This document shows, in pieces, positions 1 to 48,306 of a stretch of DNA of 64,000 nucleotides. The stretch covers positions 603,014 to 667,013 of the forward strand of contig NW_003314298.1 of assembly GCF_000143415.4 (NCBI RefSeq). The letters run 5' to 3'. The position numbers and the translations under genes are program-made. The notes beneath the pieces were generated by a model. The model saw only the letters and a program-made list of their open reading frames with translations. It was not told where the DNA came from and made no database searches. The DNA comes from Selaginella moellendorffii (lineage: Eukaryota > Plantae > Lycopodiophyta). Each line of letters begins with the position of its first letter. Within the stretch, counting starts at the first letter, position 1.

Positions 1-3000
1 TTCTTAGAAAAGCGCAACAACCACTTTTCTACACCAACTCCAGACTCTATCCAACTCAATTGCTTTAGCCCCAAAAGTTAGCATCCCTTTCGGGTCGCAT
101 CATACAAACTATCTACCAAGGTCTAAGCTAACCAAAGTCAACTCTAACCCCTTTACTAGTTTGTATTGGCTTACGAAAACGGAATGGTTTTCGAGCAAAG
201 TGATCAATAGATCAGCCATTGGAAAAGTCTAAGAAAATTTGTGGAAAATTTTCCATCCTAAAGAAAGAATGACTCTCAATCCAGAATTGCAAACTTTCAA
301 GACTCAACCACTTCCTCCTACTAACAATTCCACATAGGTTCACCTCAACACAAGTTCTCATGATCCAAAAATATGCTTAAGCATCGAACATCTTTGCCCA
401 TCTAACCGATATCCAACATCGACACCCGCAAAGTGCAAAATGAACATCTAAAGCTTGATCACGAAGACCACATCATCGGATATCCACATTGCACTAACAC
501 TCTTCTTCAACCACCTTCAAGATCCAATGTGAAGCCAAAACACTAACAAGAAAAATGACATGGAAAATCAAGCTCTAAGGAAAATTCCTCATCACTCGAA
601 TCAACAATGCCACTTCCACTAACACAAGTGCTAGCGATGTCAATGCGTCAACCTCACACCTTCTCCATCCAATAATCTACTCCAAGTGCTAACGGATCAA
701 CAGATGAGCTATAGCAAATGAATGCTACAACCCATTCCCAACACCTTAATGGGCAAACTCAAGGAACAAAGTACCAACTTAAGCTTAGCATAATGGATCA
801 CCATTGAGAATCTAGTCAAAGCTACTACAATGCTACTTCGTGCAAGTAGACTAGCTTCTCCATCAACCACTTTGGGGTTGATCATCATTTACCCAAGCAA
901 CTTCGTAAACACATTGCTCATTATCACATGGATATGATATAAATCACAATGACTTGATCATCAATCAAGCAACACTATAAGCAATGCCCATGTCACTACT
1001 GCAAAGGTTTATGTGAATATCAAGTGCTAACTCGATTTGACAAAATGCAACATAAATGCCACACCCCATCAATAGAGATTTACAACACCTAACACCACTA
1101 ACTTTTGTTCACAACACGGACAAGCTCATGCCACTATCTTTCCGACCAAACTCAACACTAATCCAACACCAAGCTACTCAAGGAGCAATAGCAAGGTTTC
1201 TCGAAAAAGAATTGAGCATTGCAACCCAAGTCTTCCAATAACAAGCTTAGACAAAATGGTTTAGCGCTTCACTGCTATCCATCCCACAACTCACCATTGT
1301 AAAACCACCATCTCCAACATGCATCAAGATAGGGACTCTTGATTGCATGATGTGAACACAAGCAATGAGTTAACACCTCGTTGCAGATCATCTCTCCAAG
1401 AAGAGAAAATGATTTACGTATTTGATCCTTCGTCCCCGATGACTCTCTTTTCGGTCTCATCTTTGACCAAACTTTAAGCTTGCTTTCGCACTGCCTTCAG
1501 TTTAATCGAAGAAAAGTTTATGAGAAAGCACGGCCATGACTACTTGAACCAATAGACTAATCCCTATGGTCTTAATTGTTCCACTTATAATCATGCCTAG
1601 GAAGGATCCACTAGTGCCATGCTAAACAGCTACGGACCAGCCTATTTGCCACTCATAGCAAACCTAGGGAGGTTTGCTTTCACCCATGGTACATGGAACA
1701 ACTTACGGAACCACTGGAACCACCGATAGGCTTACATCAATCCTGCCAACTCAAAGTGTAACCTCAAGTTGCTAATGCGCCTCACTCACGAGCCCAAGCT
1801 CAAACTCGTGCAAACGGAACATCTCCAAACCATCCTATGAGCCCAAGCGCAAGCTCACATCATAAGGTACAACAAGGTAACCCAAAACCTATCCCAAGGA
1901 ACCAATGCGAAGTCTTTGCACCAAAACGTGTACCCACTCGGATCATTGTTTTCATCTCTGCGTATGCAACGAGAATAGTTGCCCAATCTCATTGGATAGT
2001 ACTCGCCGAGACTCATTCTCTGATACCAAATGTAGCGCACGTGGTTTTGACCCTTTGTCCTATGGTGATTTACGAAGCGGAACCTAAACCCTCTTTGTGC
2101 CACGTGACAGATGCCACATGTCACATGCCACGTGTCCATAGGAACCCGAGGTTTAGGGCCTTGGGCCACTGAACGAACGATGCCAAACTCCCAAGCGTGG
2201 AGCCAAGGAGTGATGGAACCGAACCACGGAGCAACTCTCGAGCATACAGCCCAAGGAGCGAAGGGACAGGGGCCCGGAGCGACTTGGAACAGTCTTAGAG
2301 CAACCAGCATCCCAATGCCAGGACCAGCACGCAAAACGGAGCCAAACGGAGTCTGACGCTATTTCAGCATACCAGTGGCCTAACGTGAGGATATGGGTAC
2401 TCCACCTGGAATGGAACTTGGGCTTAGACCCAAGCCGGACGCAGAACAAGAACAGGCACGCAAGCAAGAGCTAGACTATGCCTCAGGTTGGTCAACCATG
2501 CCCGACCTACCCACTATCCCTACTATACATTTGGAACCCCCCATAGCCCCCCCCCCCCCCTTGAGGAACACACGCTTTGGGCTTTCACCCCAAGCCTCCC
2601 TTAATATCAGGAGTTAGTCTCTGGGACAAGCTCAAAACTTATTAAATATGGAATGTCCCTAGATTGCGAATTTGGACATGGGACGAACACCATTGTGTTC
2701 AGAACGATCTCTACATTCCGTAGATATGCCAAATGAGCAAATCTGGACACTTTCCATAAATAGCATCTGGGACAATTTGAGACTAACACAAAGGGCATGA
2801 TAGCGAGGGTGTTTGGCAGACATGGTAAGCTATCATGTAGCGATATTGAGGGACCAATCTCAATACGCAAGGGTTCTTGTTAAGCCAGTGCAAGACAGAG
2901 CAAAAGAGAACTAACAAGCCGGGCTGAGTATGCTCAGCTAAATAGACACTTAAGAATTCCTTATGCTCATCCGGCCAAGTACAGATGCAAAGTCCAGTTT

Positions 3001-3137: not shown

Positions 3138-4022
3138 TGTGACCGTATCCTTGGTCACTACACCAGAGGACTGCTCCTCTTCCTTTCCACAATCTAGGGC
3201 TTTGGGACAACATTCTAGAACACCGTGGCTCTATGTGAGCCTCATAAGTACTCTCCCCACTTTCTGCCTTTGGGTGCTCTAGCCATGGGACTAGAGTGAG
3301 TTTTTGTTGAGCCACACCAGGTATCTAAGTAGGTAGTGCCACCCACACTTGGATTGGGAGCATTGATCATTTGATCTCCTGGGGGAGCTAGAGTCGGCTC
3401 TTGAACACTTCCCCAAGCTACCCTGCTTGTCTGTCCGTATTCACTTTAGCTTTGGACTCCTCACTAGATATATCATCAACCAACACGTGGGCAAAACCTT
3501 CTTGGGTCACACTAGCCTTTCTTGGCCAAACTAGCTCTACTGGGTCTAACCCCCACACTCTCCCTATTATACTTTTGGAACCCCCTGGAGCCCCCCCCCC
3601 CCTCCCCTTGAGGATGATTGCTTTGGGCTTTCACCCAACAGCCTATATTAGTATTCGGACTCGGACTTGGACTCGATCTTGGTCCCAGTCTCGGTTCTAT
3701 CTCGGATTCCATCCCGGACTCCATTTTGGATTCTATCCAAGACTCTATCTCAGACTCCATCTCGGGTCCATCTTGGACTTCATCTCGAACTCTTCCACGT
3801 GTCATGTGTTGGTCCTCTTGTGTCCCTTTTTTAGAGACTCACTTATTGCTCGCTTCGTGCTTGTTTCTCAAGCACCTCGTTAGGAGTTCCACTCTCACTC
3901 TCGACTTTTTGAGTCGGAGCTTTTAGTCCAAATGTGTTACGCTCATTTGGCTTCTGCCTTAGCCACTACCATATGGCACCCTTTTGGCTCCTCTTTGGGG
4001 CCTAGGGATTTTGTATCTCACA
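3138..4022 (-). mobile_element. Third related LTR (family C), probably a 3' LTR
   Basis: TGTGA...TCACA termini. Contains the shared CCCTATTATACTTTTGGAACCCCC...GCTTTGGGCTTTCACCC module and GGACTC-type repeats. The flank TCCACACTACCATAGAAG resembles the PPT flank of family B at 43266. No TSD confirmed. Confidence 0.5.
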
Positions 4023-4087
4023 TCCACACTACCATAGAAGTGGACATTGGAGATACAAAATGACAATCTAGTATTGGTGGATCTTAC

Positions 4088-5508
4088 TATAAGGAACCAA
4101 CTCCCTGAGGTGTCATAGGCTAAAAGGATCCCCGAAAGCACAACTAAATTGATAAAGAGTTCATTGGATAGGATTGAGTTTGAGATCGAGTTCAAGACCA
4201 ACTCTAAGACTGAGTTCAAGATAGAGTCCAGGATCGAGTATGAGGTTGACTCCAAGACCGAATTCAAGACCGAGTTTGAGACTGAGTTCGAGATGGAGTC
4301 CGAGACCGAGTCCGAGGTTGAGTCCAAAGTCAAGTCCGAGATCAAGTCCGAGACCAAGTCCAAGGTCAGGTCCGAGATCAAGTCTGATACTGAGTCCGAG
4401 TACTAATACAGGTTGAGAGGTGAAAGCCCAAAGCGTGTGTCTCCCAGGGGGAGGGGGCTGCAGGGGGTTCTAAAAATATAGTAGGGATAGTAAGGTCTAG
4501 GAACCAGTCTTGAAAGAACTCTCCGAGTACTAATACAGGTTGAGAGGTGAAAGCCCAAAGCGTGTGTCTCCTAGGGGGAGGGGGCTGCAGGGGGTTCTAA
4601 AAATATAGTAGGGATAGTAAGGTCTAGGAACCAGTCTTGAAAGAACTCTCCAGTGGTGTTTCCAAACTAACTTGAGGTTGAAACTAGGGTCGAGGGGCCT
4701 TGGGTGGGAGTGAGCATGGACTTGGGTGGTGCTGGAGGGGCCACCCAAGGAAGTGCTCAAGAGCAGCTCCCACTTTCTGAAGGGAAACCGACTGCAGTGC
4801 TCCCGGCTCATGTGGAATGGTGCCCCACTTGAGTACCTTGTAGCTCATTGGTGTAAGCTCCTGAGTTTGGACTTCCCGGGAGGTCACCCAGCCCAGTACT
4901 ATTCAAACCCAAGGACGCTTAAGCCAAATATCCCAAGACCCTTAACCGATTGGAAAAGGGGGTGCACTCTTGTTCATGGGCCCTTTCCCTCTATATTTGA
5001 ACCCCATGGATCGTCTCTCAAGTCGTTCCCTTTAGTTGCTTACAATTGGTCCTCATGCTTGGGCCTTCACTTTAGGATGGAAGTGGGGGGGTAGAGGTAC
5101 CCATATCGGGTCGTTAGGCCATGGTGTTTCCCCTCGGCGTCCCGAAGCAAGTGTTGCACCCAAGGCTTGGGATTTAGAGGGTCTTATGATCAAGCCTTGT
5201 TGTACCAAGGGATGTTAGAAACCTGGAGGCTTGGTGTGCTTGGCTGCTTGTGCCTGCAGGGAGTGTAGTCGAACTTTAAGTCCAATTTAACTCGGGGAGG
5301 GGGAATTGGGAGAGATTTGGGAATCCATGGATAGATGGCTAACGCTTCGTTGCTTGTGCAGTGAGTAGCTGAAACCAAGTAGGACCAAATAAGAGCTGGT
5401 ACAATAAGCAGGAGCCTTGGCAAGGGAATTTAAGCAAAGGCCAAGGTAATGTTGGTTAGATAGACGAGGTAAGTTGGCAAATTGAAAAAGAAAAATTTGT
5501 AACTTACA
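4088..5508 (+). mobile_element. Solo LTR of chromovirus family B
   Basis: Reverse complement of the LTRs at 42100-43265 and 45779-46924. T(A)TAAGG...CTTACA ends with TSD CTTAC at 4083-4087 and 5509-5513. Has an internal ~128-bp tandem duplication (~4396-4651) and GAGTCCGAGATC-type repeats. Confidence 0.88.
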
Positions 5509-5513
5509 CTTAC

Positions 5514-7800
5514 CAACCCAAAAAGTCCAATAGTCTATAGGATTGTCATCAAAGAAGAGGAGATTCCTAACAAAGACATAAACAAGGAAGGAGGGCCATT
5601 TATATAGAGCTTCAAAAGACATTCATTAAGAATATCGTTCAAGACTCAAAGTTTATTCTATCAACTATAATACAGCTTGCAAAGAAAGGAATCCATACAA
5701 CTTTCACTGCTTATGGAATCCCCAAGGACAAACTAACCTTGTCAAGGGCATTGTTGTTGTGGACAGTCAACAATAAGATTCTAATTGAGAGATTTTTTTA
5801 TCAGAGAAAAATAGAAGAATCAAAGCATCCATTCCATGACCTCTCCAACTACAATCCAAATGATGGACATAAGGTAGATCACATTGTTGATGATAAACAT
5901 ACCTTAAGCAATACATCCTCATTAACATCAATGTCCAATAATCAGGAGAGTGAGGACGATGAAGACAAAAGAGATGATGACATCCAAGTGAAAGATAAGG
6001 CACAACACAAAGATAATGAAGAGGATAATAGTGAGGCAGAAAGTGACAAGATTAGTGATGAAATTCAAGATAAGAGTCCTTCCTCATCATGAAAAGAAAA
6101 AGAAGATGATGATGAACCACCACAGAAGAAGGTTAGATGTGAACTTTGGAGCAAGGTTGCAAGCAATAGTGTAGGGATGAGCTAGGGACAAAAGCCTTCA
6201 TACAAAGCAAGAAGAAAAAGTGTCACGCAATAAATAAACCAAGAGAAGGTAGAAATGAAGGCTCTAAAGAAAGGAGTAAAAGGGTGAAATATAACAACAT
6301 AGTTACAACAATAGGGGTAAAAAAAAAAACCAATGTCAATGGGACACCCTTGTTGAGGTACAAACAATACTACTTCAACGATAAAACAATCTACAAACTC
6401 CTAGTGTCTTGGTGCATCATTGATGCAGACTACAATCACTATGCTCTTTGTCCACGATGGGTGAAAACCCTCAAGGAGCTAATGATTGTACAGGAGAACT
6501 CAATGGATCTAAGTGATGCAATCCCAATCACTATGGATGAGGATGGTTGGACATTTGTCTAAAGGATAGGCAAAGAAACAACAAAAAATCCAACAATCAA
6601 ATTCATCATCATGTCTGGGTAGCACTTGACAAAAGCAATGCAAGAGATCTCTTCTAACCTGATATACATGAAGGAGATGCAGGTAAAATTCTCAATGTGA
6701 TACTTCTAAATTATGAAGGGATCAACACCACAAGATACCATCATCGAGATATCTGATCTTGCGAACACGAAGGCAAAGAACCAACACAAAAGTAGCCTCA
6801 ATGACAAGCTTGTACATAGTTGCCACCACTAGGAGAGACTCAGGAAACTTGCCAAGAAAAAGCACAGACAAAGTGAATCAACCAAATTTGAGCTAAACAT
6901 CTTTGTCTTTGCCTTGAGTGTGAGGTCACAATTGTCCACAAAAATATCTTTCTCTATTTAAGATATATAGCCTCCTCACAGTTAAGCGTTATATTAGCTT
7001 CAAGGACAAGGACAAAGAAAAGCTATTACTCCAGCCAAGTGCAACAAAGTTTCTATTGCATATGCACAATTTGTCAGATCAATACAATATGATATTGGCC
7101 CTTTAGATAGGCTCTTGAGATTTTAACCTTGAATATGCTTTGGGGAGGCTTGGTGTGCTAACAAACATATTTTGATATAAAATGCATGATGAAGACATTT
7201 GTAATGTGCTTGGTCAAATTATACTAGAAAAATCTTTCAAAATTTCAAACTCAAGATGGAAGAAATGGTGTTGAAATTTCATCTAGACATCAGTGAGTTT
7301 GAAGTTTTCATTCTAAATGACACACCAAATAAATGTTACTGTTTAAGACAGTTTGGATGTTTGCATCCTTGTTCATTTGACCCCAACAAACTAGATACTG
7401 GTGAATTATGTACTCTAGTAGACACACTCAAGAAACTTATAAAGCATAACAGATGTCTTCTCTGATATAGTTCTTATGTGAGTGATCATATTGAGGATTA
7501 GCCAATGTTCCAACAATTTTACATGTATGAGTTTTTTGAGAAGAAGTTGGAGGCAAAGGATTGGCAACTTTATTACTTATCAAAACCTCTTCAATCACAA
7601 GATATGAAATTGATTGAATTTTTGGCAAGGATCATTTTCAATAAATTAAATGAACTTACCATTTTTACACAACTATGGCTTTCAATTTGAACATTATTGG
7701 TATGTATACTGATGCACAACAAGTCACTTTTATGGATGCTATAATAGAAAAAACAATATGAAATCGAGTCAAAGATGTTACTCTATCAGATGTATCCAAA
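5514..7800 (+). pseudogene. Degenerate coding remnant, probably TE-derived, identity unresolved
   Basis: Chain of short + strand ORFs (5739-6092 acidic, 6284-6562, 7256-7465, 7505-7690) with coding-like A-rich bias and many stops. Confidence 0.3.
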
Positions 7801-22600: not shown

Positions 22601-23819
22601 GTCTGGCATAATAGCCTGCTTGGTGTTAAAAAATAAAATAGAAACCGTTGTCAGAAGCTGCACCGATTGAGAAAAGATGATACGTCAAGCCCTCGGCCGT
22701 GGACAGAGGACACGAAGCTGCTCGTGCTCACGCCAGAGGGGATCGGCTTGGAAGTCTTGGAAGTGACGAGGCTGAGGTTGGTGTTTTTTTGACATAACTA
22801 CTCAGACAAATGTTTTGCAACTTTGTAAATGTATTCAAGGAAACCACAGAGTGCTTTGTGTAGATCGTCTCGTTTTGCCACTGCCAAAGCGTACACTTCC
22901 ATCTACCCCTGGAACGTTGTTTTATGGCATGGCGTTGCAAAAACAAAATAAAGAAAACTAAAGAGAACATAGACCTGGAAGGTTGAAGCCCCGGGTGTTA
23001 TCTAGTTCGTTGAACAACAAGCATCCTAGTTAGAACAAACAGTATACGAGTAGATTCAGGCATCTTTTCTTATAAATTCAATCATTGTTTTCATTGAGGT
23101 TGGACCATTGTCATGTATGTCTTCAGCTGGATTGAAGATCGCAGGTGCCCAACGTTGTTTCTCAGCTCCCAGGTCTTTGCGTTGAGCGCAGCAAGAATAT
23201 AACTCAAAGTGCTGACAATCTCTCCAAAACGTTGACACAAAATATCTCCAATCTAGTGGCATTTTTCTTCTTGGCACACGCTATGACATGGCGTTTTTCT
23301 TATCGTCGTTGACAGCACCAGCATATCACTTGGCTTCTTCATGACAAGAAATTAGAACAAATCGAAACATGTGCGAACCTGGCAATGTGAAACTCAACTT
23401 CCAATGATCATTAGTTTTGTTAGTATTCACACAGTTTTGTCCACATCGGTGAGTTTCCTTTCGCATTGAGAATTCCTTGGCCCGTTGTTTTGCGCTTTGC
23501 TTGTTTGAGTTGTTTGAGCATATCATCTTAGCTTGACTGTGTCACTGGTTCCCTTTTGCATTGCAATCGAAAAGAAAGAGCGTGGTGTCTTCAAACGTTG
23601 AGAGTTTTAACACGAATTCTTGATCGCCTCTAGCCTTTCTTTTATCGTTGGTTATACCTCTTAGCTTGTTGCTTCGCTTTCTTGTCCCCAGCAAATCTCT
23701 GTCTTAGTCGCTTCAAAGAAAACCCCTACCTAAATGAACTTACCAGTGCGAAGCTGCCTACCTGGACCACAACCCCAACCCCAAGACTGTTGGAACTAAG
23801 CTGAACATGCACACAACCA

Positions 23820-23891
23820 GGGCAGGTAGCTCAGTGGTAGAGCACCTGGCACCGGTGTAGGAGGTCCTGGGCTCAATCCCCGGCCTGTCCA
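23820..23891 (+). tRNA. tRNA-like cloverleaf inside TRIM LTR 1 (B box mutated to GGCTCAATCC)
   Basis: GGGCAGG/CCTGTCC acceptor stem, GCTC/GAGC D stem, 72 nt. Confidence 0.65.
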
Positions 23892-24024
23892 GATCCATTT
23901 TCCAACATGGTATCGGAGCTATGGTTGGATGGCCTGTGGTAGGCATGGACTGGGCAGGTAGGGATGTGTGGTGTGTTCAGCTTAGGGGGGAGTGTTAGAA
24001 CTAAGCTGAACATGCACACAACCA

Positions 24025-24096
24025 GGGCAGGTAGCTCAGTGGTAGAGCACCTGGCACCGGTGTAGGAGGTCCTGGGTTCAATCCCCGGCCTGTCCA
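24025..24096 (+). tRNA. tRNA(Ala)-like cloverleaf inside TRIM LTR 2, non-canonical anticodon loop
   Basis: A box TAGCTCAGTGG, B box GGTTCAATCC, 7-bp acceptor stem with G3-U70 and A73, 17-nt anticodon arm, 5-nt variable loop, T arm CTGGG/CCCGG. TTTT lies just downstream. Confidence 0.75.
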
Positions 24097-24638
24097 GATC
24101 CATTTTCCAACATGGTATCGGAGCTATGGTTGGATGGCCACCTGGCACTGGTGTAGGAGGTCCTGGGTTCAATCCCCGGCCTGTCCAGATCCATTTTCCA
24201 ACATGGTATCGGAGCTATGGTTGGATGGCCTGTGGTAGGCATGGACTGGCAGGTAGGGATGTGTGGCGTGTTCAGCTTAGGGGGGAGTGTTGGAACTAAG
24301 TTGAACATGCAGGTAGGGATGTGGTAGGCATGGACTGGCAGGTAGGGATGTGTGGCGTGTTCAGCTTAGGGGGGAGTGTTGGAACTGTGGTAGGCATGGA
24401 CTGGCAGGTAGGGATGTGTGGCGTGTTCAGCTTAGGGGGGAGTGTTGGAACTAAGTTGAACATGCAGGTAGGGATGTGTGGCGTGTTCAGCTTAGGGGGG
24501 AGTGTTGGAACTAAGTTGAACATGGTATCGGAGCTATGGTTGGATGGCCTGTGGTAGGCATGGACTGGCAGGTAGGGATGTGTGGCGTGTTCAGCTTAGG
24601 GGGGAGTGTTGGAACTAAGTTGAACATGCACACAACCA

Positions 24639-24710
24639 GGGCAGGTAGCTCAGTGGTAGAACACCTGGCACCGGTGTAGGAGGTCCTGGGTTCAATCCCC
24701 AGCCTGTCCA
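24639..24710 (+). tRNA. tRNA-like cloverleaf inside the last TRIM LTR
   Basis: Same 72-nt fold. A T-stem U-G pair is converted to U-A, and there is one D-stem mismatch. Confidence 0.65.
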
Positions 24711-25859
24711 GATCCATTTTCCAACAAAGACATCCCGTCCGCCATCACTGCTCTAACCCTTCATCAACTATGAACTCTAAACTTCTATTATGTTTAGTCC
24801 AAAACAAAGCATCTTATGAGCTACTTAATTACTCATCGCTAGTCCTGTTGATCAGACAGCCTGCTGGATGGCTCTTCTATGCTGCTATTGCATGCCTGCA
24901 CAATAAACTTTTGGATCTCAGCTAGTGATAAAACCTTATAAACAAAATTACACCTTTGTTTAATGTTTGAAGAAGTTTTGGGTTTTTTTCCTCAACTTCT
25001 CAATAAGCTTATTGACAACATCTTAAACCACAATAATCATTTGTTTAAACCATTGTGGCATCTATAATGTCTGTTGTGTTAGATATAACTAAATTTTGTT
25101 TTTGTGTTTTTGGGGATCTTTTGATAAATGTATATTTTCACCTTTTTTTTCTTAAAGCAGTTGGAGATGTTGTCATTTTGGAAGGATAAATATGTTTTCA
25201 AAAATAACATGTGATAATCTCTAATAGACAAAAGAACTCAGCTGAATATTGTTAAAAGGTTAATTAGTAAATATTGAGATTCCAAGGTGATCCCAACCAA
25301 GTGCTATATTGTGCAAAAACTCCTTCGAATCAACAATAATAACCAACTCATCGGCAATAATAACTTGATTATTTTTTACTAACTTCACAACAGCAACAAA
25401 TTAGGTGGATCAATCATTTATATTTACAATAAAAACTATGGTTATTTTTATTGCATTATTTTATGTAAAACTTGGAGATCCACCATGTTCATGATTAAAA
25501 CTAGTTTCCCTAAATTGATATTGCATTTAAATAAAAAATACTCTAATAAATAACTCACCCTGACATTATTATTATAGATTTGAAGTATACAAACCAAAAC
25601 ATTTCCATGTCCCAAAGGAACACAATAGTAAATGCGTTGCTCATCAAAATATTTAATCCTTCTGGTACCTATGAGAAATTGTGTGGTATTTTGTATATGG
25701 ACTATACTACCTTTATGAAATTGAAACAAAAAATATAAATCAAGATCAAATTTAAATTATATATAAAACTAGTTCAAATAATATGGCATAACATAAAAAT
25801 ACTGAGGAATAAAAAAATCACATACAAAAAATAAATTTAATAAAATATATATTATAATT

Positions 25860-34181: not shown

Positions 34182-36929
34182 ATGAAGAGCTCGTCGGATC
34201 GGCCGACAGGTACCGCCATTCTTCTTGCTCCGATTCCCCTCCTCCTCCTCCTCCTCCTCCTCCTGTGCTCTTCGATCGGGAGGGGCAGCAGCCAGGGCTG
34301 CTCCAAGGACAGCCCTCTCGTCGGATTCTCGGCCGATCTCGGCATGATCCAGCACCAGCTGCGGGGCCGCGTGACCATCCTCGACGACTGTAGCTTCCGC
34401 GTCACGGGATTCGACATGATCCAGGGCTCGCCCCACGTCTGCTGGTGGGGATCTCTGGGCGAGGATTTTCGCAACCTCACGCAGGGATTCCCAGTCTCGG
34501 CCGCGCCGCTCAACCACACTCTCCTCAGCGACGACATGGAATTTCAGCTCCTGGAGAATGTGACTTGGGAAAAAATCCAAGTCCTCGCGGTCTGGGACGA
34601 GATCACAGCCTCGGACTTTGGTCACGTAGTTCTTGACTCGAGCTGGAAGAATTCGAGCTCTTCTTCTTCTTCGCAAAGAAAGGTTCCAGCCACAGTCTTG
34701 GAGAACTGCGTGGAGCTTAGCCCGCTATACAGGCTAAGGTGGAGCTTGCTTCCAGGGAATTCTAGCTCGCTTCCAGGGAATGGTTCTTCGGTGGATATAG
34801 CGCTCGAGGCAGTGGTGCCGGAGACGAAGTATATGGCGTTTGGATGGGCGATGCCAGGGAAAGAGAACTACTTGATGATGAACGCGGACGTGGTGGTGGC
34901 GGGATTTAAGAACAGGGACACACCCTTCGCGGAGGACTACTACATCAGCAAGTATAGCGAATGCAACTGGGACTTTCAGAATCCATCCGGTGTGTGTCCC
35001 GACGTTGTTTACGACAGTAGCAGCGACAACAGCACCACTGTGCTTGTCCACGGCCAGCACGTAGACGGAGTAGCGTTCGTCCGCTACAACAGGCCGCTGT
35101 ATAGCTCCGACACCAAGCTCGACGTCTCGATCGATCCCAGCGCCAACATGACTGTGATATGGGCGCTCGGTCCGCTCAAGCCACCGGACAGCTTGCAGCC
35201 GTTTTACTGGCCGCAGAACCACGGTGGTCCGGGGAGAGTCTCGTTTGGACACGTAAACTTGGTTCTCTCCGACGCTGTGAATCAGTGCTCGGGCCCCCTG
35301 GTGGCGACGGAAGCCGAGCCGACGATCGACGTGATTGTAGCGGACAGAGGCTCTCCGCTCGTGGTTACGTCGGAGGAAGCGGCACACTATCCGAATCCAC
35401 CCAGCCCGACCAAAGTTCTCCACATCAACAAGAAGGAGGCTCCCATTGTCCAAGTTGAGAGGGGCGTTCCAGTGATTTTTTCCATACAAGCGGGTCACGA
35501 CGTCGCGTTCTACATCACCTCGGACCCCGTTGGGGGGGCGACAAATCCAAACGAGACCATTTTTGCGGGTGGCCCGGATGCTCACGGAGTGTTGTCGCAT
35601 CCGTTGGCTTTGAGCTGGCTTCCAAACAGGACGACGCCGGACGAAGTATACTACCAGGCTTTCTTCGAGAAGAAGATGGGATGGAAAATCCAGGTGGTGG
35701 ATGGCGGCCTCTCGGACATGTACAATAGCAGCGTCGTTTTGGCCGAGCAACAGGTGACGGTTTTTTGGACGACGAGTGGCACGAACATATCGTTCGCGGT
35801 GAGAGGCGAGCGAAAGAGCGGCTATCTCGCGATATCCTTTGGCAGAGGGATGGTGAACTCGTTCGCCTACGTAGGCTGGGTAGGGGCGGACGGGACTGGA
35901 TACGTGAAAAGCTACTGGATCGACGGCAGGGACGCGTCAAACATTCATCAAACAAGCGAGGAGCTGTGGGACAGGAGGTGCTCGTCCGAGAAGGGTGCAG
36001 TGACTTTCGAGTTCACCAGGAGCTTGCAACCGCGGTGCTCGTCGGACAACGACAAGGCCTGCAAGAAGAACGTCGTGGATCCATCGGTGCCGCTGAGGAT
36101 CGTCTGGGCGATGGGATCAAAGTGGGACGCAAACTTCCCGTCGGACAGAAACATGCACGACAGAACGAGCAGGAAGGCAACGGTGATCTACCTGGAGAAA
36201 GGCGCGGCCGAGGCGGACGAAGAAGTGAAGCCCGTTCTCGTCGTCCACGGGTTTATGATGTTCCTGGCCTGGGCGGTCTTGTTCCCGGGAGGCGTGGTAG
36301 CGGCAAGGTATCTCAAACACTTGGAGAACAACGTTTGGTTCCAGGCACACACTTATCTCCAGTACTCGGGCGTCACCGTGATGCTGCTAGCCTTCCTGTT
36401 CGCGGCTGCCGAGCTCCGGGGCCTCCACACAGAGACGGTGCACGTAAAGCTGGGACTGTTCAGCATTCTCCTGGCTTGCTTCCAGCCGGTGAATGCGTTC
36501 TTCCGCCCCGCAAAGTCTCCGCCGGGCCAGCAGCAGCACAAGCTGAGGATGATTTGGGAGTACTTGCACGTCTACTCGGGGAGGGGCGTGCTGGTTTTTG
36601 GGCTCGTCACTTTGGCCTCGGGGATGTCTCTACTGGCGGATATCTATGGGAGCGAGCACGTCCGGGGCTTTGAGTGGGCCTTGCTCGGCTGGGTGTTCAT
36701 GGTCTCTGGGATCATTGGCTACTTGGAGCTGAGACAGTTTTGGAACAAGGGAAAAGCTCGAGAGGCTCCTCCGGCGTGGGACGCGGATGGGCGATCGGTT
36801 CACGTCCTGGACGACAGTGATGAGGAGCGCGAAGATGACTCTGCGGGCTTGCTGGTGAATGGAAACTCGCGGCACGAGTTCCCAGCGGCATCGAGAGGGA
36901 TGGAAGTCCAGCTAGAAGCATTCCATTGA
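34182..36929 (+). CDS. Cytochrome b561, DM13 and DOMON domain-containing protein (At5g54830-like)
   Basis: Intronless ORF (open from 34080; ATG 34182 precedes a poly-Leu signal peptide). DM13 (QHQLRG...DDCSFRVTGFDM...VWDEITASDFGHV), two DOMON domains, and a C-terminal b561 with VHGFMMFLAWAVLFPGG and conserved His residues. Confidence 0.93.
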   Translation: MKSSSDRPTGTAILLAPIPLLLLLLLLLCSSIGRGSSQGCSKDSPLVGFSADLGMIQHQLRGRVTILDDCSFRVTGFDMIQGSPHVCWWGSLGEDFRNLTQGFPVSAAPLNHTLLSDDMEFQLLENVTWEKIQVLAVWDEITASDFGHVVLDSSWKNSSSSSSSQRKVPATVLENCVELSPLYRLRWSLLPGNSSSLPGNGSSVDIALEAVVPETKYMAFGWAMPGKENYLMMNADVVVAGFKNRDTPFAEDYYISKYSECNWDFQNPSGVCPDVVYDSSSDNSTTVLVHGQHVDGVAFVRYNRPLYSSDTKLDVSIDPSANMTVIWALGPLKPPDSLQPFYWPQNHGGPGRVSFGHVNLVLSDAVNQCSGPLVATEAEPTIDVIVADRGSPLVVTSEEAAHYPNPPSPTKVLHINKKEAPIVQVERGVPVIFSIQAGHDVAFYITSDPVGGATNPNETIFAGGPDAHGVLSHPLALSWLPNRTTPDEVYYQAFFEKKMGWKIQVVDGGLSDMYNSSVVLAEQQVTVFWTTSGTNISFAVRGERKSGYLAISFGRGMVNSFAYVGWVGADGTGYVKSYWIDGRDASNIHQTSEELWDRRCSSEKGAVTFEFTRSLQPRCSSDNDKACKKNVVDPSVPLRIVWAMGSKWDANFPSDRNMHDRTSRKATVIYLEKGAAEADEEVKPVLVVHGFMMFLAWAVLFPGGVVAARYLKHLENNVWFQAHTYLQYSGVTVMLLAFLFAAAELRGLHTETVHVKLGLFSILLACFQPVNAFFRPAKSPPGQQQHKLRMIWEYLHVYSGRGVLVFGLVTLASGMSLLADIYGSEHVRGFEWALLGWVFMVSGIIGYLELRQFWNKGKAREAPPAWDADGRSVHVLDDSDEEREDDSAGLLVNGNSRHEFPAASRGMEVQLEAFH

Positions 36930-40600: not shown

Positions 40601-43600
40601 GCTGGAGCGACGAAAACAAAACCTCCCGGGCTCCCAGTAAGAGGTGTCGCGGAAGATTCAACCGCAGACAAGTGTGCAAATGTTAATAATTTTGATTCAC
40701 GCTTGCATTACAAAAAATATTCCACGTGCTTCAATTAAATTGTATTATTCGGCCGTATCTTTAAAATTTGATATCTCTTTTCTCTCTCCTATGTGGCACC
40801 TAATTTTACACTTCTTTCAGAGAGGTTGAAAAGAAGCAGAGACACACAAGAGAGATATATATATATATATATATATAATTTGCTTAACTTCTCAAAGTTT
40901 ATTTTATCAATTGGTTTTGCAACCAGAATTTATCCAACCATCAAGCTCTAGTAAATAGATAGTAATTCTACCCAATCATTCATTTATTCATTCATTCATT
41001 CATGTTTACATGGTCTTGTAGTGCCCCCTTCTGCATTAGTCCAGTTGGAGAACTACAAAATCACCTCTACAATGATCTTATGAATCCTCTCTAATCTAAA
41101 CTAGATCCAAACATAAAAAGGAAAGAAATACTTAACCATGTGCTATTGCAAAGATGTTGATGTTGAGATTGATGCACATCTCACAACCTTGATCCCCAGA
41201 AGGCAGTGAGTAAGATAGGCATGGAAGAGAAGAGTAGATGTTGAGCAAGTGGAGTGTATGTTATTATGGCCAAGGATATAAAAGACAGAAAGGGGATAAG
41301 TCTAGTGTGCTATCACCAGCCTATATAACCACTACATGCCCAGTCATCCAAGTCAAGAATTTAGACCGGAAGAAATTTTGATCTCAATTCCTAACTCAGA
41401 AAATGCCTTTGTGCGAAAATCACGATGCAAAATGCATGTACCTCTCTACTCTCCGACGACTAGAGTTGAGCAGCTCTTGCAGCTCAAGCTTCCATTGTAG
41501 TGGTGGTAGCAGTTGTGGTGTTAGCCTCTGGTTCTTCCTCATAGTCCTTGAGCTTGTCGCGAGTGTAGTTCTTTATGGCAGTCTCGAGCATCTGTAGTTG
41601 GGCCTTGAGCTCCATGTTCTCTTTGGTGAGGCAGGCATTCTCGAGTTGGTACTGCTGCGCTAACTCGAAAGATTCTCAGCAGGTGTTTGGTGTTGGGAGT
41701 CCATGAGCCTGTATAGTGCAAAGGATTCCCTTTACCTGATCGAGTTCCTGAGCCATGCTTGCATTTTCTCCTCGTGTGGACGTGCAAAAACATTGCGGAA
41801 GAAGCTCTCCATGTCGTCCTGCATGTACACCGCCATGTTGGAGTTATGGTACTGCTCCAGGAAGTTTGTAGGCATGGGACGGATCACTTTCGGTTGCTGC
41901 TGGTCCTGATGATGATGCTCATGCTGCTCCGAATTGTAGTGGTGGTGCTTGTTGTTAATGTGCTCATGATGAAATTGGCGTTGCATTGTTGAACAAGGCG
42001 GCTGCATGTTGTCAGCAGTGGTGTCTGGAGCAAATGTCTGTTGCAGCTCAGCTGGCTGCTGTAGCTCGGTTGGCTGCTGCAGCAAAGATGGCTGCTCCTT
42101 GTAAGCCACAAATTTTTCCTTTCCAATTTGCCAGCTTACCTCGTCTATCCGACCAACTCTGCCTTGGCTTGTGCTAAGTTCCCTCGCCAAGGTTCCCGCC
42201 TATGGTACCAGCTCCTACTTGGTCCTACTTGGTTTCAGCTACTCACTACACGAGCAACGGAGTGTTAGCCATCCATCTATGGATTCCCAAATCTCTCCCA
42301 ATCCCCTCCCCAGGTTAGACTGGACTTAAGGTTCGGCTACACTCCCCGCAGGCACAAGCAGCCAAGCACACCAAGCCTCCAGATTCCTAACACCCCTTGG
42401 TACCACAAGGTTTAATCATAGGACCCTCTAAATCCCAAGCCTTTGGTGCAGCACTTGCTTCGGGACGTCGGGGCAAAACACCGTGGCTTAATGGCTCAGT
42501 ATGGGTACCTCTACCCCCCCACTTCCATCCCGAAGGGAAGGCCCAAGCCCCTAGGAAGGGCGAGGACCAATGAGCCACAAGGTACTCAAGTGGGGCACCA
42601 CTCCATATGAGCCAGGAGCACCGCAGTCGGTTTCCCTTTCGGGAGTGGAGTTGCTCTTAAGCACTTCCCTGGGTGGCCCCTCCGGCACCACTCAAGCCCA
42701 TGCTCACTCCCACCCAAGGCCCCTCGGCCCCAGTCTCAACCTCAAGTCAGTTTGGAAGCACCATTGGAGAGTTCCTTCAAGACTGGTTCCTGGACCTCAC
42801 TATCCCTACTATACTTTTGGAACCCCCTACAGCCCCCCCCCCCCCCCCCCCCTGGGAGATGCACGCTTTGGGCTTTCACCCCTTGACCCTTATTAGTATT
42901 TGGACTTAGTCTCTGGCTCGATCTCGGACCCGATTTCGGATCCGACTTCGGATTCAGTCTCGGACTCGATCTCGGACTCGATCTCGGACCCGATCTCAGA
43001 CCCGACCTCGGACCCGACCTCGGACTCGGTCTCGGACCTGATTTCGGGTCTCGGACTCCGTCTCAAACTTGGTCTCGAACTTGGACTCGAACTCGGTCCC
43101 CGAGTCGGTCTCGGACTCGATTCCGGACTCTATCTCGAACTCGGCCCTAGAGTCGGTCTTGGACTCGATCTTCGACTTGGTCCCATCTGATGAACTCTTT
43201 GTCATTTTGGTCATGCTTTTGGGGTTCCTTTAGCCTACGACACTTCGGCGGGTTTGTTCCTTACAACTCCACCACCCATAGAAGAAGTTCGATGCCCACA
43301 TCGAACATTTCGTTTTATCCTACAACTTGTTGACCATGTCTCCGGGGGCATCCCCCCCACTTAGCGGTGTGCCTAAGTTAGCCTCCCCGGCCAAGAGCCC
43401 ATGACAACAGAATATAGGTGTCTCTATACCCCTCACCTCACCACGCCCTAGTATGGGGACTTGAACCCAACCTTGCTTTACTAGGGGGTTGGGACTTGAA
43501 CCCAACCTCCGTAGAATATGTCTACGGATTTGACATCCCCGCGGGGAGTCGGGCGTAGTGCCCTACGCCTGGTCGACCTATCCAACCCATGCTAATTAGC

Positions 43601-43664
43601 TTACCTTCGGCGCGCCTTTGGGTCCCAATATATGCCACTTGCTCAACTTTGCAAATTGATATTT

Positions 43665-44850
43665 TTAATTGAATTTTGCACAAGTACATAGAGTTCTGCC
43701 ATGCAAAAATTCCTCCACTAGATCTCGCGCGTTCGCTAGGTTCTCCTCCGGTTCCCATGTTGCTTCGCAGTGTGGAAATCCTTTCCACTTCACATGGAAC
43801 TCTCTCACCTCGCGTTCTTGTTGCTTGCTCTTGCGCGCATTGAGGATGGCCTCGACTTCGTATTCCTCTTCCCCTTGGATAACCTTAGGTAAAGGTTTCA
43901 CTTGGTCCTTGCGAAGCGGATCCTCAAAGTACGGCTTAAGTAAGTTCACATGGAACACTGGGTGCACCTTCCCCATCTCTCAAGGAAGTCGGAGTCGGTA
44001 AGCCACTTTACCGATTTGTGCCTCAATCTCGTAAGGCCCCGCGAACCTGCTTAAGGAACTCAAGATCAATTCATTTACAGGAATACATGCATCTTTACCT
44101 TTGGGTCAACTTTCGGCTGATCCCACTTGGTAGCCTGAGGTTCTTGGTGTTCAGCCACACCTTCTCCCCAACTTGGAACTCTACATCTCGACGCTTTTGG
44201 TTTGCGTATTTAGTTTGCCTTTGTTGAGCCTGTTCCAAGGAATCCCTCACTAGATTCCAAATGCTGAGTCTTTCCGCCGTGAATGCCTCCACTGCGGGCA
44301 ACTCTCCATGATACTCGGCCACGCCGAGTTCCACAGGACCTTCAATAGCTCGCCCATTGATGACTTCCCATGGACTCACCCCGATACTCGAATGTGGTGA
44401 GTTGTTATAACACATTTCCGCAAGTCCCAAATGACTTACCCAATCGGTCTGATCTCCCGAGACATAGCATCGCAAATAATCCTCCAATTGCCTATTCACC
44501 CTTTCTGTTTGTCCGTCTGTTAAGAAGTGTTAGTGCTAACAACTTGACTTAATACCCCATACCTGTCTGTGGGTGATAGGCTGTGCTGAATTTCAACTTG
44601 GTGCGATACTGTTCCAGGAGAGTCCTCCAGAACCTACTGGTGAAGATCTTATCTCGATCTGAGATAATCTCTTCCGGTCTTCCCCGCACTTGAACCACTT
44701 GTTCGAAGAATAGATTCGCCACACCTTCCACATCCACTTCCGTTGTGGTGGGTATGAAATGTGCCATTTTCAAAAATCGGTCCACCACCACGAATATCGC
44801 ATCAAACCCCTCGCTTAGGGGGAGTCCTGTGATGAAGTCCATCGTAAGAC
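43665..44850 (-). pseudogene. Integrase core + GPY/F + chromodomain, interrupted by two introns (44517-44562, 44047-44098)
   Basis: TMDFITGLP...VVDRF...IISDRD...STAYHPQT^DGQTERVNRQLEDYLR...KLTQR^FAGPYEI...VHPVFHVNLLKPY...YEVEAIL...VKWKGFPHCEATWEPEENL. One TGA after AYRLRLP. Confidence 0.9.
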
Positions 44851-45719
44851 AGGTTATCGTTGAAATGCACCTTGATGGCCGCATCCAACGCTTCCTTGTA
44901 GTTAGTCAGGTTCCACCGCATCACTTCACCGCGAGCCCAGGTTTGCAAACCTGATATGAAGGCATGGAACGCATCCATATCCCCCATGTCCATGACAAGT
45001 ATCCTCTTTGCCATAAACCCATTCACATACTCCTGAATGGTTCCGGTCTGCTTCAGCCTATTCAGCTCGTCCCTTAGATGCAGAGTAGCATTCGGAGGAA
45101 CGTAAGTTGCGCGGATCCTCGCCTTCATCATTTCCCAAGTGGCCACCGGTCCTTCATTGGCCTCTGTCGTTCTCCACCAAGACTTGGCATTATCTGCCAA
45201 GTATGGTTTTGCACATGGGACCTTCTCCGAGCTCGGTAATCGCAACGCTCGGAAGTAATCCTCCATATCATAAAACCAATCCTCCACCACCTTATAGTCG
45301 TTCACTCCCTTGAAGACCGGTGGGGGCTTTGGTTTGTACTTGGGAACTGCCTGAGGGACTGATTCCACTTTGGTCTATTCGACCTTGTCTGGTTTTGCCT
45401 CAGTCCCTGCCGAAGGGTCCACACCTTCTGCGCTGCCAGCATCCGCAGTCTTTCGCCTTTTCTTGCGCTTCTCATCACGCTTTAGCTTGCGTACGAGAGT
45501 CTCCAGCAGGGCATTGGTCTGTGCCAATTGTCCTTCTAGCACATCCAATCGAGCCTTGGACGACCGAACCTCACCACCAGACTCCTGTTTGGATGTTGCC
45601 TCACTGGAGTCCTCCTCATGCAAGGATTCCTCATCCATAGCCTCCTGTTCGACCGGAGGCTCCAGCTCTGGAGGAGGTTCCGTCTCTGCCTGGGTTCGCT
45701 TATGTCCTGCCCTTGCCAT
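44851..45719 (-). pseudogene. Gag of the nested chromovirus (one in-frame TAG at 45375)
   Basis: ORFs 45375-45719 and 44802-45368 are in frame. Retrotrans_gag-like YLADNAKSWW...LRDELNRLKQTGTIQEYVNGF...FISGL. Confidence 0.85.
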
Positions 45720-48306
45720 CTCCCAACAATCCGCCTCTATCCTTCGCTAGAACTGAGGAAGACGCTCCGATACCAAATTGTAAGCCACAAATTTTTCCTT
45801 TCCAATTTGCCAGCTTACCTCGTCTATCCGAAAAACTCTGCCTTGGCTTGTGCTAAGTTCCCTCGCCAAGGTTCCCGCCTATGGTACCAGCTCCTACTTG
45901 GTCCTACTTGGTTTCAGCTACTCACTGCATGAGTAACGGAGTGTTAGCCATCCATCTACGGATTCCCAAATCTCTCCCAATCCCCCTCCTCGGGTTAGAC
46001 TGGACTTAAGGTTCGGCTACACTCCAGGCACAAGCAGCCAAGCACACCAAGCCTCCAGATTCCTAACACCCCTTGGTACCACAAGGTTTAATCATGGGAC
46101 CCTCTAAATCCCAAGCCTTGGGTGCAGCACTTGCTTCGGGACGTCAGGGCAAAACACTGTGGCCTAACGGCCCAGTATGGGTACCTCTACTCCCCCACTT
46201 CCATCCCGAAGGGAAGGCCCAAGCCCCTAGGAAGGGCGAGGACCAATGAGCCACAAGGTACTCAAGTGGGGCACCACTCCACATGAGCCGGGAGCACCGC
46301 AGTCGGTTTCCCTTTCGGGAGTGGGAGCTGCTCTTGAGCACTTCCCTGGGTGGCCCCTCCGGCACCACTCAAGCCCATGCTCACTCCCACCCAAGGCCCC
46401 TCGGCCCCAGTCTCAACCTCAAGTCAGTTTGGAAGCACCACTGGAGAGTTCCTTCAAGACTGGTTCCTGGACCTCACTATCCCTACTATACTTTTGGAAC
46501 CCCCTGCAGCCCCACCCCCCCCTTGGGAGACGCACGCTTTGGGCTTTCACCCCTTGACCCGTATTAGTATTTGGACTTAATCTCTGGCTCGATCTCGGAC
46601 CCGATTTCGGATTCGATCTCGGACTCGATCTCGGACTCGATCTCGGACCCGATCTCGGACCCGACCTCAGACCCGACCTCGGACTCGGTCTCGGACCCGA
46701 TTTCGGATCTCGGACTCCGTCTTGAACTCGGTCTCGAACTCGGACTCGAACTCGGTCCCCGAGTCGGTCTCGAACTCGATTCCGGACTCTATCTCGAACT
46801 CGGTCCTAGAGTCGGTCTTGGACTCGATCTTCGACTTGGTCCCATCCGATGAACTCTTTGTCATTTTGGTCATGCTTTTGGGGTTCCTTTAGCCTACGAC
46901 ACTTCGGCGGGTTGGTTCCTTACACTCCTCAGCACACTGGTATGGTGAAGATGGCTGCTCAGCAGGCTGTGGCAACGAATGTTGGTGCTGCTCGGCAGGC
47001 TGCAACGGTGGAGGCTGCTACTGCTGAGGCTGGTGTTGCTCGGCGGTCTGCTCCATGGGTGGTTCGTAAAAAATGTTGTGCCCCTACTCAATGGATGGTG
47101 GATTTGTAACCGTCTCAGGATTTTCAAGAATATCCTGCATCAGCGAAATGTGATCGTCCACTAGAATTGTTGTACTTGGAGACAGAGATTGTGCTGGTGC
47201 ATGCGGTGGTGATGGTGGCAAATCCGGCTGCAGTGAGCTAGGAGGCTACAAGCTCTTCGTTGATGGCTGTGTAGGTGCCAAACTCTGCTGCCGTTTTGTT
47301 TTGGATCTAGAAGTTCTCGTTGGTTGTTGTCGTCTCGGCACTATATGCTGGATTGTTTGCACATCACTGTCATCACTATCAATCTGTGGAGGCGCAATGT
47401 TTCTTCTGCCTTGTCCCCATGTCTTTCTTTGTGGAGTTGCTATTGTCTTTCACTGGACCTTTTTCTTCTCGGTATTCATCAAGTGTTCTTCAGCTTGGCA
47501 CTTTGAACTTTTTGTGACTTCATGCTGTGGAGGCAGAGGTGGTGGACTGTAGACCACTATGGCTTGACTTCTATGCGTGATGATGGCTCGGACATACGGT
47601 AGTACCAGTGTCCTCACACATTTCTTCGCGTTGAGTTCTCCTGCCACCTTCTTAAGTTCCCTACGAAACTTCGGGATCACATATCCTGCTAAATCCACTT
47701 TCTTCCCAGCTTGAAGATCCTCATAAATGAAGGCCACAGATCTGCTCACTGTCGTGGCAGTCTTCCAAAATTCCAGGTTGAGAACAAGGAACTTGAAGAT
47801 TTTGTAGAGCTCGTCCTTGACGTTGGAGAATTGCAAACTAAGCACTGAGTTGTTGTGCGTGGAGCAGAGACTGGCTCGCCTTCGTCTAGGAGACATAGAG
47901 CTGTTGCCACCTCCAAATCTTCAAGTTCAACTTGGCCGGTGGCGAGATCCATCAAGTGAGCCTTCTCGTTGCTCACTTGATTCATGAGATATTCTGCCAT
48001 TCGTTCTGCAAAGTTGAAGAGTCCGTGAGTGCGAGTCCAACACTTAACATCGTCATTGAATTGCCACTCAAGATTTTAAGAAAGGATGACGGTTTCTGTC
48101 TGGGATGTTTGCTTGGTTTGCATTGTGTCGACTCTTCGGTGCTGTTGAGAATGCTCTTGTACCTGTGATGCAAATAGAGGAAAAGATATGAGCACTCTTT
48201 CTATTCTTGTGAACACACTCTTTTTGTTTCTTTTGTGGGCACTCTCTTTTCTACTTGCTTTCTTCTTGTTTCTCTTGATTGGTGTGTTTCTTAGAATCTG
48301 ATACAC

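Follow-up and report, generated by a model that had tools for sequence, protein, structure and literature searches.

A Helenus-1_SMo insertion in Selaginella moellendorffii, probably expanded into a short and internally rearranged tandem array

Helenus elements are TRIMs with tRNA-derived sequence in their LTRs, named by Kojima 2024 (Biology 13:119, PMC10886601) and grouped together with Ajax and Cassandra as TRIMp3 (PMC10886601). The sole plant family, Helenus-1_SMo, comes from Selaginella moellendorffii (assembly GCA_000143415.2) and has an LTR of 120 bp, an internal domain of 85 bp, a full length of 325 bp and a TSD of 5 bp (PMC10886601; Repbase). The animal and fungal members, such as LTR-11_DR, for which tandem arrays have also been seen, share the tRNA-like LTR with the element described here, but those of animals differ from it in their 4-bp TSDs and Gypsy-type PBSs, and most of the fungal families differ in priming from the tRNA anticodon loop (PMC10886601). 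Cassandra (Kalendar 2008, 2020) is likewise a non-coding TRIM with an iMet PBS in which each LTR holds a Pol III module from a small-RNA gene together with a terminator, and it too forms short arrays, in which some three LTRs alternate with internal domains (Kalendar 2020). The Cassandra module is however 5S-derived, with boxes A and C, rather than tRNA-derived, and the elements are longer, at 565-860 bp (PMC10886601). Experiments have moreover shown that Cassandra is transcribed, while transcription of Helenus is inferred; within the TRIMp3 class, of which the present locus is an example, Pol III transcription has been shown for Cassandra only. The tRNA-derived SINEs (SINE2) resemble the present element in their tRNA-like head, in the A and B boxes that form an internal Pol III promoter and in being short and non-autonomous, yet they have neither LTRs nor a PBS or PPT and depend for their mobility on LINEs, through target-primed reverse transcription, whereas the element described here is fully of the LTR type.

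The window analysed is a 64-kb stretch of S. moellendorffii DNA, and the block of interest occupies its positions 23788-24726. Our reading of this block, to which we give a probability of about 0.93, is that it represents one insertion of Helenus-1_SMo which is now a short, internally rearranged tandem array of three full LTRs and two full plus five partial internal domains, within one TSD.

Anatomy of the locus and its identity with Helenus-1_SMo

The three LTR copies are 120 bp long, differ pairwise at 2-4 positions, and in every case begin with TG and finish with CA (Table 1). The PBS, TGGTATCGGAGC, lies immediately 3' of LTR1 and LTR2, and the PPT, AGGGGGGAG, immediately 5' of LTR2 and LTR3. 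The PBS matches at 11/12 positions the plant iMet PBS used in Cassandra searches, TGGTATCAGAGC (Kalendar 2020). The 5-bp TSD, AAGAC, is present as a single pair adjoining the block on both sides, and its length is that of the plant and fungal Helenus elements. Coding capacity is absent, the ORFs across the block being mechanical read-through of the repeats with no retroelement ORF among them, and the arrangement of short LTRs around a short non-coding internal domain is that of a TRIM. The LTR-retroelement signals listed in the initial annotation of this stretch, namely an iMet-type PBS, a PPT, the TSD and the lack of an ORF, were thus all recovered at 23788-24726. Its 8-bp terminal inverted repeat held for LTR1 and LTR3, in which all 8/8 bp pair, but not for LTR2 and the published consensus, which carry TGTTAGAA and reach 7/8.

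Table 1. Features of the Helenus-1_SMo array, in positions of the window (L and I with a number denote positions in the LTR and in the internal domain).
Feature	Positions	Strand	Remarks
TSD left copy, AAGAC	23783..23787	+	
LTR1, 120 bp	23788..23907	+	2 changes vs Helenus-1_SMo LTR consensus: L5 A>G and L85 T>C (L85 inside B box)
tRNA-like unit of LTR1	23820..23891	+	48.7 bits; A box 23827-23837; B box mutated to GGCTCAATCCC at 23870-23880
Internal domain, 85 bp	23908..23992	+	PBS 23908-23919, PPT 23984-23992; 84/85 vs published consensus (I65 is T, not C)
LTR2, 120 bp	23993..24112	+	120/120, identical to published Helenus-1_SMo LTR consensus
tRNA-like unit of LTR2	24025..24096	+	52.7 bits; G3.U70, discriminator A, anticodon stem 4 bp, loop 9 nt, CCG at anticodon position
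Rearranged middle	24113..24606	+	partial LTR and I pieces, mapped onto the LTR+I unit
LTR3, 120 bp	24607..24726	+	4 differences vs consensus
tRNA-like unit of LTR3	24639..24710	+	46.5 bits; one D-stem pair broken
TSD right copy, AAGAC	24727..24731	+	

Each of the three LTRs contains one tRNA-like unit, called by ARAGORN as a 72-nt tRNA with the anticodon CCG (3/3) and matched end to end by the Rfam model RF00005 with scores (Table 1) that exceed the gathering score of 29. Within the window, the A box sequence TAGCTCAGTGG and the B box sequence GGTTCAATCCC are confined to this block, and both boxes are intact in the consensus and in two of the three LTRs. A CAA upstream of the unit and a TTTT downstream of it had been pointed out from the first, and both are in place, the former at -6 to -4 and the latter 6 nt past the end of the unit, at LTR positions 111-114, where it forms the sole run of four or more T in the block.

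When the published consensus was compared with the locus letter by letter, LTR2 proved identical throughout and the first internal domain departed from it at one position, I65, at which the later internal copies of the block carry the consensus base. A search by tool with a 57-nt core likewise gave 0 mismatches to the published consensus. The locus agrees with Helenus-1_SMo in its dimensions, in the sequence of LTR2, in PBS and PPT and in where the tRNA-like unit lies, and differs from it in that the present copy is a three-LTR array with six partial units rather than the canonical 325 bp. The family is thus already known, having been published in 2024, and is not new. The initial annotation had recognized no described family with such a structure, a claim of novelty that fails because Kojima 2024 had catalogued this one, as a tRNA-LTR TRIM of equal dimensions and sequence; its view of the element as a TRIM with a tRNA-like LTR module, the tRNA counterpart of Cassandra, is by contrast the way in which the family is described there (PMC10886601).

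The rearranged array

From 23788 to 24139 the block is a clean LTR-I-LTR followed by the first 27 nt of a further internal domain. The 939 bp in full are not the single unit of ~325 bp that was originally proposed but consist of LTR-I-LTR, six partial units and a third LTR. The pieces that follow from 24113 are, in order, I1-27; LTR57-120 joined to a full I and LTR1-24; I50-61; I32-85 with LTR1-10; I29-85 with LTR1-24; I50-85 with LTR1-22; and I3-85, which leads into the full LTR3. There are six jumps between pieces, each with a microhomology of 1-6 nt. The junction from LTR24 to I50 is present twice, indicating that a piece which already contained it was copied again. All pieces from 24250 onward carry C at I65 and G at L5 and have 1 nt deleted at I47. 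Those among them that reach LTR position 14 have T at L14 in common; the first unit is free of these variants of the later pieces, except for the G at L5 in LTR1.

These features bear directly on the alternative that the middle of the block, 24113-24606, is an artefact of assembly and that the insertion in reality has the simple form LTR-I-LTR or LTR-I-LTR-I-LTR. Short tandem repeats are known to assemble poorly (Kalendar 2020), and the segment 24316-24519 is covered by no contig in four sequencing runs. This gap neither confirms nor refutes the assembly there, and contigs that fit two places are common (51 in run X1 and 113 in run X3). The microhomologies at the junctions are typical of real template switches, one junction is duplicated together with its surroundings, and the pieces share private variants that are missing from the first unit. 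We therefore consider an artefact unlikely, although it is an alternative that retains some weight.

Because only one TSD encloses the block, a single insertion is indicated. If the array is real, as we believe, the extra partial units could have arisen during or after this insertion, through microhomology-mediated template switching or slippage and through unequal recombination, as in the short Cassandra arrays with three LTRs; alternatively, the cDNA that was inserted may already have been multimeric. Arrays of the Selaginella family are not described in Kojima 2024 (PMC10886601), and the microhomology-joined array is in this respect a small addition to the published family description.

Transcription and replication

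In the proposed model, the A and B boxes of the tRNA-like unit would recruit Pol III, as inferred in Kojima 2024, where the Pol III promoter of Helenus is stated to be without experimental validation (PMC10886601). The start of transcription would lie a little 5' of the unit, near LTR position 30. Nothing else in the LTR resembles a terminator but the T4 (LTR positions 111-114), and a genomic RNA would be obtained if this weak T4 were read through in the 5' LTR and ended the transcript in the 3' LTR. The product would be a terminally redundant RNA of ~290 nt, with an R of ~84 nt and a U5 of ~6 nt. A T4 only 6 nt past the tRNA-like unit would be expected to stop many Pol III transcripts ahead of the PBS, which counts against the model.

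Contigs from sequencing runs give hints of RNA. Two runs, X3 and X4, are probable RNA runs according to the guess of the tool, and their contigs give no strand, ends or polymerase. The contigs of X3 total 37 Mb, which fits a transcriptome, and their summed depth is 14,000-155,000 over the element as against 0-23 over the flanking repeat. In X1, a DNA run of the same organism, the reverse is seen, with the flanking repeat deeper than the element, so that X3 is not plain genomic DNA. X4 contains a 235-nt contig, at a depth of ~2,500, which is identical to 23883-24117 and passes through the T4 to reach the PBS. Its length exceeds the 205 nt of one LTR+I cycle by 30, as expected of a cycle that closes on itself in a k=31 graph, and on this ground the contig would represent such a cycle. 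The contigs of X3 and X4 are compatible with a terminally redundant read-through RNA. In X24, the only run recorded as RNA-seq and available as raw reads, 4 reads were found, all of them from another diverged copy, a scarcity that is compatible with a non-polyadenylated RNA, with tissue specificity or with silence. The RNA evidence is accordingly new but weak.

The genomic RNA could instead be made by Pol II or by read-through from a neighbouring gene, in which case the tRNA-like part would be a passenger or the source of short, dead-end Pol III transcripts. The presence of the T4 so close behind the unit in every LTR speaks for this, as does the fact that no experiment exists for any Helenus (PMC10886601), and a few reads from a diverged copy, as in X24, are what a read-through transcript would yield. 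The A and B boxes, however, are not only intact in the consensus and most LTRs of the locus but are conserved in Helenus families of three kingdoms (PMC10886601), and with its 32 bp the U3 upstream of the unit leaves little room for a Pol II promoter. The sequence is moreover scarce in the RNA-Seq cDNA of X24 (for which polyA selection is not on record) and very deep in the two probable RNA runs, as would be the case for a non-polyadenylated RNA. Transcription by Pol II or from a neighbour thus appears unlikely, and Pol III would be the likelier polymerase. A more ambitious proposal is that transcription of Helenus-1_SMo is active and abundant and yields a non-polyadenylated RNA extending past the first T4, and that the hairpin of the PPT and LTR start possibly serves replication or drives the rearrangement of the array; this we put forward as tentative and somewhat doubtful. 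If it is true, expression of a Helenus element would be documented for the first time by the contigs of X3 and X4.

For replication, reverse transcriptase and integrase would have to be supplied in trans by an autonomous LTR retrotransposon. The PBS 12-mer TGGTATCGGAGC recurs on the minus strand at 45764-45775, in an unrelated LTR element with a Retrotrans_gag domain, and because the identical 12-mer serves this unrelated element, the one-base PBS variant probably reflects the organism's own initiator tRNA. This second element was considered as the autonomous partner and rejected, its likeness to the Helenus internal domain stopping at the 12-nt PBS. Both plant Copia and plant Ty3/gypsy elements have an iMet PBS and a 5-bp TSD, and since the two superfamilies share both features, PBS and TSD cannot name that of the partner.

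In addition, LTR positions 9-32 recur in inverted orientation within the internal domain, and this copy folds the PPT and the LTR start into the loop of a hairpin. This hairpin of internal domain and LTR start, the array with its microhomology junctions and the depth of the element in the probable RNA runs are the small additions of the locus to what is known of the family.

The tRNA-like unit and other copies of the family

The detailed structure of the tRNA-like unit departs from that of a decoding tRNA. The anticodon arm has a stem of 4 bp, the closing position being G.G, and a loop of 9 nt with A at the U33 position, while the acceptor stem, with G3.U70 and discriminator A, is at odds with the CCG anticodon. 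G3.U70 and discriminator A are alanine identity elements for AlaRS. The properties of a functional tRNA gene, that is, a 5-bp anticodon stem, a 7-nt loop with U33 and agreement between anticodon and acceptor, are hence all missing from the unit. The cloverleaf has a folding energy of -24.8 kcal/mol compared with -27.9 for the MFE fold, and with a z-score of -0.39 the folding is no better than that of shuffles. The cloverleaf comes from homology and differs from the thermodynamic optimum; thermodynamic stability was accordingly dropped as support for it, the MFE fold being a different one and shuffles performing equally well. The earlier statement that 72 of the 120 LTR bases form a full cloverleaf consequently stands as far as the tRNA calls of ARAGORN and Rfam and the A and B boxes are concerned, but has to be qualified by the 4-bp anticodon stem and by an MFE fold that is not the cloverleaf. 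Because the anticodon loop has 9 nt and U33 is absent, the unit would appear to be a promoter module rather than a decoding tRNA.

It is very improbable, against this background, that the locus contains three genuine functional tRNA genes (for tRNA-Arg-CCG or, going by the acceptor stem and its alanine identity elements, tRNA-Ala) that lie in a repeat by chance. ARAGORN and Rfam do call complete tRNAs, above the gathering score, but besides the irregular anticodon arm and the conflict between anticodon and acceptor identity, a conflict of isotype that recurs in most Helenus families (PMC10886601), the units sit at a fixed position in LTRs accompanied by TG..CA, PBS, PPT and TSD, and the D stem is broken in one copy and the B box mutated in another. 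Predictions of tRNA genes in the genome are inflated by Helenus-1_SMo, which at this locus accounts for three false calls of tRNA-Arg-CCG within 1 kb. Scarcely credible is the further idea that a tRNA-derived SINE entered the LTR of one TRIM copy as a one-off event, for although Kojima proposes a SINE2 insertion into the LTR of an ancestral TRIM as the origin of Helenus, the unit is present in 3/3 LTRs of the locus, in the published consensus, which was built from the copies of the genome (PMC10886601), and in several diverged DNA contigs with other flanks.

The contigs in question come from X1, in which several diverged contigs of 92-96% identity span the LTR including the tRNA-like part and at least four exit the LTR precisely at its first base, into different flanks. 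The tRNA-like part is therefore a family trait. Among the variants found in contigs, C>T and G>A transitions predominate; some of the variants keep pairs as G.U and others break them. An exact-pattern scan of metagenome contigs with a 27-mer of T arm, acceptor and trailer gave no match. A 207-nt contig of X1 links 23784 to 24729 without the element; because its flanks are ~6% diverged, it represents an empty site in the flanking repeat that is either paralogous or diverged. The summed contig depth of X1 over the LTR, ~4,000-6,000 compared with 110-240 for single flank contigs, suggests, as a rough guide only, tens of LTR copies.

A hairpin at the internal domain-LTR junction

In Helenus (Helenus-1_SMo), a non-coding TRIM with a tRNA-like unit in each 120-bp LTR, positions 55-78 of the 85-bp internal domain repeat LTR positions 9-32 in inverted orientation (window 23962-24024), with 20 of 24 aligned positions identical and one gap, a match whose score was equalled in none of 1000 shuffles. 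When the two copies pair, the 15-nt hairpin loop between them therefore contains the PPT together with the initial 8 nt of the LTR. The same inverted copy is present at every later internal domain-LTR junction of the rearranged array. Internal positions 45-54, immediately before it, are a direct repeat of the 10 nt with which the tRNA-like unit begins. The RNA of internal domain plus LTR has a folding z-score of -4.15. The hairpin may favour the template switching observed in the array.

Sequencing depth over Helenus and its flanks

The internal domain and LTR (window 23857-24621) reach very high contig depth in X3 and X4, two probable RNA runs, whereas almost no reads fall on them in the certified RNA-seq run (X24); this contrast is possibly a first sign that non-polyadenylated RNA is made from a Helenus element.

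On both sides of the insertion (window 23500-23750 and 24732-24830) the sequence is itself repeated and transcribed, and Helenus thus landed inside another repeat family. Contig depth here rises to about 11,000 in a DNA run (X1), several diverged paralogous contigs match, and stranded X24 reads map to the flanks, many fitting only in part, with joints near 23568-23693 that skip about 57-123 nt.

Other LTR elements in the window

A gag-bearing LTR element lies on the minus strand, its LTRs separated by only about 2.5 kb and its PBS exactly identical to that of Helenus. Two further PBS-like 12-mers may mark other LTR retrotransposons.

LTR-element features in the window
Feature	Position	Strand	Detail
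LTR element	42099-46900	-	LTRs, PBS, Retrotrans_gag domain
Its LTRs (roughly 1.1 kb)	42099 to about 43230; 45778 to about 46900	-	94-97% identity
Its 12-bp-period tandem repeat	about 42909-43232; about 46568-46891		within the LTRs
Its Retrotrans_gag domain	44802-45368		
Its PBS	45764-45775		TGGTATCGGAGC
iMet-PBS-like 12-mer	2017-2028	-	one mismatch
iMet-PBS-like 12-mer	35104-35115	-	one mismatch
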